Assembly: GCF_000143415.4 (NCBI RefSeq)
Contig: NW_003314267.1
Span: forward strand, 2,645,839-2,709,838
Length of the DNA: 64,000 nucleotides
From: Selaginella moellendorffii
Taxonomy: Eukaryota > Plantae > Lycopodiophyta
Reading direction: 5' to 3'
A program made the position numbers and the translations under genes. Under the pieces are notes generated by a model, which saw nothing but the letters and a program-made list of their open reading frames with translations, was not told where the DNA came from and did not search any database. Shown one piece after another: positions 28,701 through 32,797 of the stretch (the stretch's first letter is position 1; the number at the start of each line of letters is the position of its first letter).

Positions 28701-29449
28701 GCAACATTCTCATCAGTGACAAGAAAACTGGCAAAGTTGCCGACTTTGGCCTCTCCAAAATGACCTCGGAAGGGTCGAGCCTCGTCTCCACCACTGTCAA
28801 AGGAACAGTGGGATACTTGGATCCCGAGTAAGAGCTCTTCTCTCTTCTTCTACTTCTGTCTCTAAAGCTCGATCCTCTCTTCGCAGATACTACATGAACC
28901 AACGCCTCACCGAGAAGAGCGATGTCTATAGCTTTGGAATCGTTCTCCTCGAGACCATCTCCGCGAGAGAGCCTCTCAGTCCCGAGCTCTTCGAGCCGGA
29001 ATCCAACATCGTCCAGTGGGTCAGTGCGATCTCTCGCGTAGTTCTTCTTCGATCGAGCTCATGGATTCCTCTTCTTCTTCTTCCAGGCTCGAGCGGCTCT
29101 CCAAAAGGGGGACATAAAGAGCATCGTGGATCCAGCGCTTGGCGACGCTCCCCGGATGGAATCTCTGTGGAAGGTCGGCGAGATCGCAATGTATTGCGTG
29201 GAGCCGCATGGGGTGAATCGACCAACGATGGCGGAGGTGGCGCGCGAGCTCCAGGAGGCTCTGGATCTCGAAGAAGAGCCGGTCGGCCTCGAATCATCGC
29301 CAAAACCACACAATCCCGACCAATTCGACGATGACGTAGAATCATCGCGAGCAGCAGCAGCGGGAACTCCCTACCACCTGGATGCGCCCAGAAATCCACG
29401 GTCGACCATGGATCTAAGCTCGGTCTTCGCCCAACCCCACGCCCGGTGA
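25774..29449 (+). CDS. Malectin-like domain LRR receptor-like kinase (LRR-I family)
   Basis: Signal peptide [67 protein letters not shown] motif, LRR exons, TM, RD kinase ([19 protein letters not shown]), ends FAQPHAR. Confidence 0.95.
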
Positions 29450-29522
29450 GGGTGTTCTTGGCGCCCAAATTCAAAATATCTTCGTTTGGAGGATATTCGC
29501 TAGGGTTTATGACGAGGGCGGT

Positions 29523-31638
29523 ATGCTCCTCGCGAATCCACTGCCTTGTTTCAAGGCTTTGGAGCTTCAGCACAGATTTTCTCCGAGAATTCGAGCGCTG
29601 CGCTCCCGGTGGCGCGGCGCCAGAGCATGCTCATCGTCGGCGCCATTCGAGACTAGTAAGTGGAATTTGGTTGTGAGTTTTGTGGTTTTCTTCTGCTGCT
29701 ACAAGTCGGGCCAGCAGCAGGAGCAGCCTTGGAAGAGAATTCGTGGTGAGAACTTGATATTCTTCTCAGGTTTAGCTGCGAGCTAGATTTTTATGGCGTG
29801 ATTTTTGGAATTTCTCGCTAGATGAGCAAGAAGAATTTGATGCTGGTTTTATCCATAATTTTTCCGGGCTTGTATCTAAAGGGACTGAGAAGCTCCCACA
29901 TTTGAGGAACCGGGTGGAGCGTATGATGCAGGCTATCCAGCTGAGGAAAGCAATAAACTACAACATCCCCGCTTCAAAGGTCTGATTTCTTTCCTTGTTT
30001 TCTCTACAGTCTCATAGAATTCTTCTGTTTGCAGATCTTGGAAGCTCTCACCGCTGCTAATTGTCACGAGCCATACTGCTACGAGCGCATAGAACTTCTC
30101 GGCGATGCGTATCTCAAGTGGGCCGTGAGCACCAGACTCTATCTAAAGTTCTCAGATTTTCCGGAAGGAGAGCTCACGATCACGCGTGGAAAGATCATCT
30201 CAAACTCGGCGCTTCACTACCTTGCCTTGGAGAAAGGACTTGAGACTTACGTGAGGATAAATCCTTTCGTGCCTGGAAGAGAGCCCACGGATCTCCAAGA
30301 GCTCTCAAGTAAAGTCCTGGCAAACGTGGTGGAAGCACTGATCGGAGCTTACTACGTCCACCATGGCGACAAAGGTGCTCGGCACGTAGTGGAGTGGCTT
30401 GGTATCGAGACAGGCTTTAGCGATGCCGAGCTCCAGATCGCCAGGGCTGGAAGTGTTGTTTCTCCAGAGGTTCTCAATTCGATCGACTTTGAGGGGCTGG
30501 AAAACACACTCGGGTATAGTTTTAGATCGAGAAATCTGCTCGCTCAGGCTCTCACGCACTCTTCTTCTCGGCAAGCTTCCATGGTTCCTATTTACGAGCG
30601 TCTCGAGTTTATAGGTGATGCTGTGCTGGACCATCTCTTGACAAGGCACATATACTTCTCCTACAAGGACTTACATCCCGGGCGCTTGACAGACTTGCGC
30701 TGTGCAGCTCTTAACAGCGAGAGTTTTGCTCGAGCAATGGTCAAGCACAAGCTCCATGCTCATATCTTGCACGAATCGAATGACTTCCACTCTCAAGTAA
30801 GTTGTTGATCTCTTTTCTTTAGTTTTGTTTGGACGAGTAGTTTCCTTTGCAGCGCAGATAAAAACTTATGCGAAACATGCGCTTAATATGGAAGAGAATG
30901 CCATCTATTCGTATGGTTTTGGAGCTGTCAAGGCACCGAAGGTGTTAGGAGATGTTTTCCAATCACTCGTTGGGGCAGTCTACATTGACAGTGGCTTAAA
31001 CTTGGATCAAGTCTGGAAGGTCTGTTGTTTTTCTTTTTTCCTTTCTTTCTCTTAAACATGAAATCGCAGGTTTTTGAGCCATTGCTACAGCCGCTGGTGA
31101 CACCAGAAGCAGTTCCAATCCATCCAGTCCGCGAGCTCTACGAGCTCTGTGACAAGCACTTGAAAAAACTGGAATGGGATTACTCCTTGTCCGGGGATCT
31201 GTTCCTAGCCAGGGCTCTCGTCGGAAACAAAGTTCTCGGCCGTGGTACAAACGTCCAAAAAAAGATGGCGAAGAAGCTGGCGGCCATCAATGCAATAGCG
31301 AAGCTCGACAAAAGCGCGTCCCCTCTAACACCGTCTCAAGAAGAAAAAGCGAGTGGAGAATTCTCAAGACAGGCGCTACATGAGCTGTGCTCTCAGAGAG
31401 GTTGGCCATGTCCAGACTACAAGTAAGTTTCTAGTTTTCTCCATCTTTTTATCGATCTTCGTTTTGCAGCACACACAGTGAAACCGGGCCGGCCCACGCA
31501 AAGATGTTTACATGCACAGCATCGGTTCGTATCGAGCAAGGAGAGAAACAAGAATGCATCGGTCAGCCAAGGCCTACGATCAACAAGGCCAAAGACTCGG
31601 CAGCAAGGGTGCTTATGGAAACTTTGCAAAAAAGTTAA
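29523..31638 (+). CDS. Truncated DCL1-derived RNase III protein: connector helix, RNase IIIa, RNase IIIb and two dsRBDs; no helicase, DUF283 or PAZ
   Basis: LPHLRNRVERMMQAIQLR..IPASK/ILEALTAANCHEPYCYERIELLGDAYLKWAVS, YERLEFIGDAVLDHL, PGRLTDLRCAA, PIHPVRELYELC, FSRQALHELCSQRGWP, GPAHAKMF..ECIGQP..KAKDSAA all follow plant DCL1; exon 1 is inferred. Confidence 0.88.
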
Positions 31639-31705
31639 GTCTTTTCGTTCTTTGTAGAGCTTTGATCATTTCAACGAAAGTTAAAAATTTCATGTTTTTA
31701 CAAGG

Positions 31706-32797
31706 CTAGAAGGTGGCAAAACTTTGAGAGCCAAGAGCATCGAAAAATCTCTTCCATCCAACGTAGACTCCCTCGATAACCAGCGCAGCTAGATCCGCTG
31801 GAGGATAAATCCTGGCATTGGCAACATTTTCCTCCGCCACTACAATCCGAGAGGCACCAGCGCCATCGCTGCGAACCATCTCAAACTTTTGCTCCTCCTG
31901 AGCTCTCGCGAAACATTCATAGTAGTCCCTCTTGTCCACGAAAGGAGGTTCATCCGCATTGCCATCGCTTCTCTCCACGAGGAGAACATTGGGAAACGGC
32001 ATCACGCTGCGAAGGAGTGCTGCTAGAACGATCCTCCCAACCCGGCCATTCCCGTCCAGGAAAGGATGGACGTTCTCAAACTCGAAGAAGACCCTGGCAC
32101 CAAACTTGAGGATCGCCTCCAAGCTCTCGGCCGAGAACTCCGCCTCGTCGATGGCGATGAGCTCCTTGAGTTCTTCGTTGGAGCTCGCCACCAGCTCTTC
32201 CAGCGCTGCTTCCACTCGCGTCGGCCACAAAAAGACGTGAATTCCACCCGCTAGCGTCCTGGTAAACACCACTTCGTGCATCTCTCGCCTCAAGTGTGCT
32301 GCAAACTCGGGCTTTGTGCTCGCCATGAGCTCCTGGTGAGCTTCCAAGATCTTTGGAACACTGAGGAGCTCGACCACTGTGCCATTCTCTTGGTGATCCG
32401 GAAAGAAAATCCTCAAGGCTCGGTCGAGGCAGCGCACGGCTTCCAGCCTCCTATCGGATTGAATCACATCTCCCAGCTCAAGAGCTTTGCCCCGAAGAAT
32501 GGCTTCCCTCGTCTCCTCAAAGGTGTCAAATCCCTCTCCCTCGATCTTGTTTACCTGGAAGAGGTACTGCGACAGAGCCTCGGGGCCATAGCTCTCTCTC
32601 GCCCACCGCTTGTGCTCCTCCGGGAGCTGCCTGTATCGATCTCGGAATTCGTGGATCCTAGAGACGAGCTCGCTAGTGCTCACTGCGTCGCTGGATCGCC
32701 AGAATGGATTCGCCGAGACCTCGTAGTCCGCCTTTCCCGACGCCCGTGCGTCTACTGCGATCACAAGAGCGATCGCGAGGATGAATCGAAGGAGCAT
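31706..32797 (-). CDS. Fic-domain (AMPylase-type) protein with N-terminal signal peptide, intronless, 363 aa
   Basis: Canonical HPFLDGNGRVGR motif; VNKIEG resembles the (S/T)xxxE(G/N) inhibitory helix; hydrophobic N-terminus MLLRFILAIALVIAVDARA. Confidence 0.9.
   Translation of the reverse strand: MLLRFILAIALVIAVDARASGKADYEVSANPFWRSSDAVSTSELVSRIHEFRDRYRQLPEEHKRWARESYGPEALSQYLFQVNKIEGEGFDTFEETREAILRGKALELGDVIQSDRRLEAVRCLDRALRIFFPDHQENGTVVELLSVPKILEAHQELMASTKPEFAAHLRREMHEVVFTRTLAGGIHVFLWPTRVEAALEELVASSNEELKELIAIDEAEFSAESLEAILKFGARVFFEFENVHPFLDGNGRVGRIVLAALLRSVMPFPNVLLVERSDGNADEPPFVDKRDYYECFARAQEEQKFEMVRSDGAGASRIVVAEENVANARIYPPADLAALVIEGVYVGWKRFFDALGSQSFATF

Follow-up and report, generated by a model that had tools for sequence, protein, structure and literature searches.

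In a 64,000-nucleotide stretch of the genome of the lycophyte Selaginella moellendorffii (contig NW_003314267.1, positions 2,645,839 to 2,709,838 of the forward strand; the window in what follows) we analysed a gene for a truncated Dicer protein, here called the mini-Dicer, which lies on the plus strand at window positions 29523..31638. Our results suggest that it is an expressed partial duplicate of DCL1 whose product probably binds, or at most nicks, double-stranded RNA (dsRNA) instead of dicing it. The derivation from DCL1 is well supported by sequence similarity, gene structure and phylogeny. Compared with canonical DCL1 (from Arabidopsis, AtDCL1; PDB 7eld), the mini-Dicer is colinear from the connector helix to the second dsRNA-binding domain (dsRBD2), shares four core introns and falls within the DCL1 clade; it differs in having no helicase, DUF283 or PAZ domain, in the deletion of the RNase IIIa insert, in a new 74-aa leader, in an N for D exchange in RNase IIIa and a Q for E exchange in RNase IIIb, and in evolving several times faster.

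Domain architecture and catalytic sites

The product of the gene is the 608-aa RefSeq protein XP_002965641.2, named "endoribonuclease Dicer homolog 1", to which the protein that we assembled is identical. Pfam recognised in it two Ribonuclease_3 and two dsrm/DND1_DSRM domains and nothing else, the order of elements being connector helix, RNase IIIa, RNase IIIb, dsRBD1 and dsRBD2, and neither a helicase nor a DUF283 or PAZ domain was found. In addition, tblastn searches with AtDCL1 and a second full-length angiosperm DCL1 matched only the C-terminal part and detected no remnants of these three domains within the 64-kb window. Both searches thus confirm the domain content given in a preliminary description of this DNA, which was made from the sequence alone and had the gene follow DCL1 from the connector through both RNase III domains and both dsRBDs without the helicase, DUF283 and PAZ. 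The same description took the IIIa insert and the linker to be shortened, of which the first part stands and the second does not: the insert (AtDCL1 1441-1494, about 54 aa) is gone, the alignment to PDB 7eld skipping from 1440 to 1495, whereas the IIIa-IIIb linker has its full length (164 residues versus 163 in AtDCL1). The linker between the two dsRBDs is about 18 aa shorter than in AtDCL1. In the AlphaFold2 (AF2) model the core has a predicted local distance difference test score (pLDDT) of 80-97, and Foldseek matched this model to the RNase III modules of Dicer and of DCLs from plants. As modelled, RNase IIIa and IIIb are kept as an intramolecular pair with the dsRBDs placed after them.

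The IIIa motif reads SSKVLANVVEALIGA versus SSKTLADVVEALIGV in Arabidopsis DCL1 and the IIIb motif APKVLGDVFQSLVGA versus APKVLGDIVESIAGA, exactly the D to N and E to Q changes that had been noticed beforehand. According to the alignment, the first is codon AAC at 30323..30325 (plus strand), N224 in LANVVEAL, equivalent to E. coli D114 and to the Asp of AtDCL1 LADVVEAL; the second is codon CAA at 30960..30962 (plus strand), Q416 in GDVFQSL, which corresponds to E117 of the E. coli enzyme and to E1813 of human Dicer. Of the eight metal-binding acids the other six are kept: IIIa has E147, D151 and E227, and IIIb has E318, D322 and D413. Neither centre presents the canonical E, D, D, E set, IIIa consisting of E, D, N, E and IIIb of E, D, D, Q.

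A second 608-aa RefSeq entry on another scaffold, XP_002989272.2, presumably represents the second haplotype of the two-haplotype assembly; it differs from XP_002965641.2 at 7 residues and keeps both N224 and Q416. RNA evidence was drawn from contigs of four runs (X1, X3, X9 and X13) from four studies, aligned to window positions 29000-31900. The four RNA sources show 23 coding differences elsewhere, but none of them, and neither haplotype, departs from the N224 and Q416 codons; the substitutions are therefore not sequencing errors, a doubt attached to them at the outset. Just upstream of D413, at window positions 30941-30942, we observed the nonsynonymous changes K409N (X13) and V410L (X1); D413 and Q416 themselves are unchanged.

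Gene model, transcripts and sequence constraint

The mini-Dicer is encoded by a genuine, expressed and spliced gene that is intact in both haplotypes. Spliced RNA contigs support six exons, and all five introns are GT..AG introns of 47 to 76 nt. Exon 1 (29523..29745; all exons and introns are on the plus strand) starts with the ATG at 29523 and encodes the 74-aa basic leader; its joint from 29745 to 29822 was seen in X3, X9 and X13, is in frame with exon 2 and equals the RefSeq model. Intron 1 (29746..29821, 76 nt, GT..AG in RNA contigs) is retained in an X1 contig. Exon 2 (29822..29979) holds the remnant of the Dicer connector helix, homologous to about 1316-1358 of AtDCL1 as judged from RNA contigs, segment BLAST and tblastn, and exon 3 (30035..30796) encodes RNase IIIa with its insert deleted, the IIIa-IIIb linker and the first two thirds of RNase IIIb, as placed by Pfam, the AtDCL1 alignment and RNA joints. 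Intron 3 (30797..30857, 61 nt, RNA contigs) has the position of the AtDCL1 intron after residue 1659. Pfam and RNA contigs assign the end of RNase IIIb to exon 4 (30858..31019), dsRBD1 with its KKMAKKLAA motif kept, the short inter-dsRBD linker and the start of dsRBD2 to exon 5 (31070..31422), and the remaining dsRBD2 with the GPAHAK and KAKDSAA motifs kept to exon 6 (31470..31638), which ends with the stop codon TAA at 31636-31638. The GT..AG joints in the RNA contigs are 29745/29822, 29979/30035, 30796/30858 and 31422/31470; the remaining intron (31020-31069) was seen only as a break between contig pieces at 31017/31068, the joint row being skipped at a repeat.

The preliminary description had placed the gene start at 29822, which the spliced contigs correct: this is the first base of exon 2 (phase 1), and the coding sequence begins at 29523. 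An ATG at 29822 was considered as the start and rejected, being out of frame and opening an open reading frame (ORF) of only 27 codons; the RNA-supported exon 1 takes its place. The view that frames and introns are intact proved right, with five GT..AG introns and an ORF identical to the RefSeq model. Older partial models of the gene, SELMODRAFT_84784 and SELMODRAFT_129431, are 524 aa each, and when the largest exon was searched exhaustively against proteins, a 608-aa protein near-identical over that exon was recovered. Of the words sampled from the stretch, about 0.65-0.70 are present in the run assemblies, in line with the expectation for spliced mRNA. The leader encoded by exon 1 has no homology to DCL1 and an AF2 pLDDT below 50, and the exon also appears to overlap the 3' untranslated region of the upstream gene, which encodes a receptor-like kinase and has its stop codon at 29447-29449. 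An intronless ORF of 363 aa (31706-32797, minus strand) lies directly downstream, tail to tail with the mini-Dicer gene.

The alternative that survives best, unlikely as we consider it, is that the mini-Dicer gene, though expressed, has no function and is a partial copy of DCL1 on its way to a pseudogene, with the catalytic changes as part of a general decay. Several observations lend it weight and count against a functional binder or nickase. Of 354 positions invariant in canonical DCL1, 203 are kept and 134 changed, and the branch of the mini-Dicer in the tree is long, about 0.9 changes per column; low conservation together with a long branch would equally be expected under relaxed constraint. 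A comparison of just the two haplotypes gives 7 nonsynonymous and 4 synonymous differences. Two of the four assemblies, X1 and X9, have contigs that keep intron 3 and carry a 12-nt deletion at 30820, while in X3 and X13 the intron is spliced, a pattern which may reflect allele-specific splicing; with the intron retained, translation would stop after HSQ, within the RNase IIIb domain. Moreover, an out-of-frame ATG precedes the annotated start by 14 nt (29509), and its ORF of 56 codons overlaps with this start. RNA contigs run unbroken from the last kinase exon into exon 1 of the mini-Dicer gene (29086-29750), which means either that the transcription units of the two genes overlap or that part of the mini-Dicer expression comes from read-through; since the contigs continue from the 3' end of the kinase gene, they do not mark a transcription start for the mini-Dicer. 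The contig on the kinase side has about threefold depth in X9, where it ends near 29720. Furthermore, a search of the protein collection with the 608-aa protein, within the searchable length range, yielded no orthologue from other Selaginella species or elsewhere outside S. moellendorffii, only DCL1 fragments and a protein of the lycophyte Diphasiastrum complanatum, and a search with the 254-aa exon, within its length window, returned DCL1 fragments only and no close relative. As no other Selaginella orthologue was found, the conservation of N and Q could be assessed only in near-identical RNA sources, and the Diphasiastrum protein, the only similar lycophyte protein found, has K and E at the two sites.

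Decay is opposed by the state of the gene and by the pattern of its variation. In the two haplotypes, and likewise in a third RNA source of greater divergence, the ORF is uninterrupted and every one of the five splice sites is preserved. When pooled, the variants comprise 11 nonsynonymous and 12 synonymous changes, where about 3.4:1 is expected by sites, which gives a pN/pS of about 0.27 (binomial p 0.002) and argues against a dead pseudogene. In addition, six of the eight metal-binding acids and the RNA-binding motifs of both dsRBDs (KKxAK-type and GPxH) are kept, and the core folds confidently in the AF2 model.

Predicted activity of the mini-Dicer

The effects of changes at both sites can be read from RNase III enzymes studied elsewhere. 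Mg-dependent cleavage by E. coli RNase III is lost in the E117A and E117Q mutants, which still bind dsRNA (PMC6121014). A deep mutational scan of the same enzyme found that no change is tolerated at E41, D45 and E117, while D114 is the one tolerant active-site position, with D114G showing near-wild-type fitness (PMC10037077). In human DICER1, substitutions of E1813 and other IIIb hotspots stop cleavage of the 5p strand while that of the 3p strand continues, and E1813Q is among the observed alleles (PMC4712775). The biochemical premise of the preliminary description, that a change of the Glu blocks cleavage and not binding and that loss of the Asp is milder, is in agreement with these reports (PMC6121014, PMC10037077). 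The mini-Dicer shares with the E. coli E117Q and E117K and the DICER1 E1813 mutants the change of the metal-binding Glu, which leaves binding without cleavage in E. coli and one-strand cleavage in DICER1. It differs from them in that those are laboratory or somatic changes in full enzymes, whereas the mini-Dicer, a truncated paralogue, carries the change naturally and in fixed form, together with the D to N exchange. By analogy with these mutants, we expect no cleavage by the IIIb centre in Mg2+ and a weakened IIIa centre.

On this evidence the gene arose when the 3' portion of DCL1, beginning at the connector helix and ending with the stop codon, was duplicated at the DNA level, and it gained a new first exon. 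We propose that Q416 would abolish the Mg-dependent cleavage of one strand by IIIb and leave dsRNA binding unharmed, while N224, at the most tolerant catalytic position, would probably only weaken IIIa, which is possibly active. The protein would then not dice; at most it would nick the strand lying in the IIIa centre, and more likely it would act mainly as a binder of dsRNA or hairpins. Without PAZ or helicase it would not measure from an RNA end. The least certain step is that it might modulate the processing of small-RNA precursors by occupying their stems, or the partner proteins of DCL1, through its dsRBDs.

It is improbable, more so than mere decay, that the mini-Dicer is instead a working double-strand endonuclease, a Drosha-like or RTL-like mini RNase III which cuts by means of Mn2+, a compensating residue or a partner RNase III. 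The strongest argument for such an enzyme, and a point against our reading, is that the equivalent E125Q mutant of Sinorhizobium (S. meliloti) still cuts with Mn2+ (PMC6121014). The D114 position is moreover tolerant (PMC10037077), Asn is present there naturally in a few bacterial RNase III proteins of our collected set, and the remaining catalytic residues of the mini-Dicer are conserved. These points are set against the intolerance of E117 to any substitution (PMC10037077), the inactivity of E117Q in Mg2+ (PMC6121014) and the abolition of IIIb cleavage by substitutions of DICER1 E1813 (PMC4712775). In addition, among about 320 collected RNase III proteins, Gln at the IIIb Glu site occurs only in the mini-Dicer and in the minimal Dicer-like (mDCL) family.

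The leader is basic, with 8 R+K versus 1 D+E in its first 40 residues, and thereby raises the possibility of organelle targeting. Catalytically inactive RNase III-domain factors that bind RNA are known, e.g. chloroplast RNC1; they are organelle-targeted and act in RNA splicing or processing without cleavage.

Relationship to DCL1 and to other truncated Dicers

The best PDB sequence match of the mini-Dicer is AtDCL1 (phmmer, E 2.4e-74, versus 8e-48 for DCL3 and 1e-45 for DCL4), and in BLAST comparisons made segment by segment every segment was closest to canonical DCL1, at 44-60% identity. The values were 48% for the connector (AtDCL1 1316-1361), 60% for the first part of IIIa, 52-55% for IIIb, 46% for dsRBD1 and 47-48% for dsRBD2. 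The introns at 127/128, 381/382, 435/436 and codon 553 of the mini-Dicer correspond to those at 1358/1359, 1659/1660, 1715/1716 and codon 1851 of AtDCL1; these four core introns point to a partial duplication at the DNA level, and a retroposed origin, which we also considered, is ruled out by their retention. Exon 2 starts inside a single larger exon of DCL1, and exon 1 is new. To represent the DCL1 of a non-seed plant as closely as possible, we used a compact full-length gene on Logan contig SRR33208241_2670 (L001:3700-11750). Its introns are about 90-100 nt long, and it does not have the RNase IIIb intron that is common to Arabidopsis DCL1 and to the Selaginella and Diphasiastrum mini-Dicers.

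Two maximum-likelihood (ML) trees were built, the first with IQ-TREE under a site-heterogeneous model from 50 rows and 567 columns, the second with more DCL1 fragments and fewer distant outgroups. Both haplotypes fell inside a DCL1 clade of 13 rows in the first tree (support 97/94) and of 19 rows in the second (93/87). Within it the mini-Dicer is sister to a clade of the Diphasiastrum mini-Dicer, a liverwort protein of the Mp7g16380 type and all canonical DCL1s (97/96 in the first tree, 96/98 in the second). Because its branch is long, this basal position is possibly a rate artefact, and the age of the duplication and the depth of the split are uncertain. The PDB match, every segment, the four introns and the two ML trees agree on the derivation from DCL1 that had been suggested from the sequence.

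A lycophyte member of the RNASE THREE-LIKE lineage RTL2/RTL3, instead of a DCL1 derivative, is a very unlikely identity for the gene. The comparison had been named as a check on the DCL1 origin and gave a divided answer: ML trees, domains and gene structure favour DCL1, while the approximately unbiased (AU) test on the first tree does not reject a clade with RTL2/3 (delta lnL 6.4, p-AU 0.107), three RTL sequences being included in these comparisons. In that tree RTL2/3 also adjoin the DCL1 clade, with weak support. Against such an identity, with the same three sequences included, both ML trees place the mini-Dicer in the DCL1 clade, its connector helix and IIIa domain are unmatched by RTL sequences, its segments are more similar to DCL1 (46-60%) than to RTL2/3 (27-38%, with no match to the connector), and four introns stand at AtDCL1 positions.

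Truncated plant Dicers have been described before. The mDCL of P. patens, which combines a PAZ with the RNase III domains and lacks a helicase, has an effect on 23/24-nt siRNAs (PMC10721683, PMC5144951). In Marchantia the corresponding protein goes under two names, MpDCL1b in Csicsely et al. and MpMDCL in a 2026 paper (PMC11799827, PMC13738684), the latter reporting also a separate Marchantia gene, Mp7g16380, with one RNase III domain and two dsRBDs (PMC13738684). Conifers have short DCL1s without the N-terminus and PAZ (PMC5144951), and by description the mini-Dicer resembles them in being DCL1-like, in the same losses and in keeping RNase III and dsRBD. In that paper, where the word "catalytic" does not occur, a truncated DCL of S. 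moellendorffii stands next to mDCL in a position basal to DCL1, and the S. moellendorffii sequences did not group with the conifer short set (PMC5144951). This truncated protein may be the mini-Dicer or its older partial model.

We examined five mDCL proteins (P0182 and P0356-P0359), two from Riccia and one each from Marchantia paleacea, Calypogeia and Sphagnum fallax, the last (14G057500) being listed as an mDCL homologue by Csicsely et al. (PMC11799827). All five have a PAZ, no dsRBD, an intact IIIa and a Q or K in place of the catalytic Glu of IIIb, and some are also without the signature E or D of IIIb. Both they and the mini-Dicer are thus helicase-less plant Dicer derivatives with a degenerate IIIb Glu and a IIIa that is intact (mDCL) or nearly so. 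Membership of the mini-Dicer in the minimal family (mDCL, MpDCL1b, MpMDCL) is nevertheless hardly credible, in spite of this common Glu change, the absence of a helicase from both and the older placement beside mDCL (PMC5144951), and can be dismissed because the PAZ and dsRBD content is reversed (no PAZ and two dsRBDs in the mini-Dicer), every segment is nearer to canonical DCL1 than to mDCL, mDCL forms a separate clade with 100/100 support, and forcing the two together costs 16.0 log-likelihood units and is rejected (p-AU 0.018, first tree). Since the mini-Dicer stands outside the mDCL family, the E to Q change common to both is best read as convergent.

The Diphasiastrum complanatum protein O6H91_12G015000 (609 aa; L002:10001-15699, CM055103.1) has the same architecture, a near-identical truncation point in the connector and the four core introns. 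It differs in being only 42% identical, in keeping the IIIa insert, in carrying GD to GG and D to K changes in IIIa together with an intact IIIb, and in standing closer to canonical DCL1. The evidence on a lycophyte-wide orthologue pair is divided: the truncation point speaks for it, and the AU test marginally against it (delta lnL 8.3, p-AU 0.031, first tree). The introns common to both are uninformative here because all are ancestral DCL1 introns. A further point against the pair is that no synteny between the two genes is visible within 10 kb.

The mini-Dicer gene had already been annotated, and truncated plant Dicers (mDCL, Marchantia DCL1b, conifer short DCL1s) had been reported. New is the combination of a DCL1 derivation, no PAZ, both dsRBDs and one substitution per centre, independent of mDCL. 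Judged from the aligned catalytic residues, three truncated DCL1-lineage types appear to keep one fully intact centre each and the mini-Dicer one nearly intact centre: mDCL keeps IIIa, the Diphasiastrum protein and the Mp7g16380 type, in which IIIa is lost, keep IIIb, and Selaginella keeps a weakened IIIa. The presence of one disabled or missing centre in truncated proteins of different lineages suggests a recurrent regulatory device and not annotation noise. It is conceivable, although we put it forward only tentatively, that land plants have repeatedly made mini-Dicers with one competent centre from the DCL1 lineage, of which the Selaginella protein would be an independent strand-specific nickase or non-cutting decoy that tunes hairpins or dsRNAs for the full DCLs and is possibly sent to an organelle by its basic leader. 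For each of its two substitutions there are earlier data from E. coli RNase III, and for that of the IIIb Glu also from human DICER1. The mini-Dicer would thus provide a directly testable natural model of binding or nicking without dicing.

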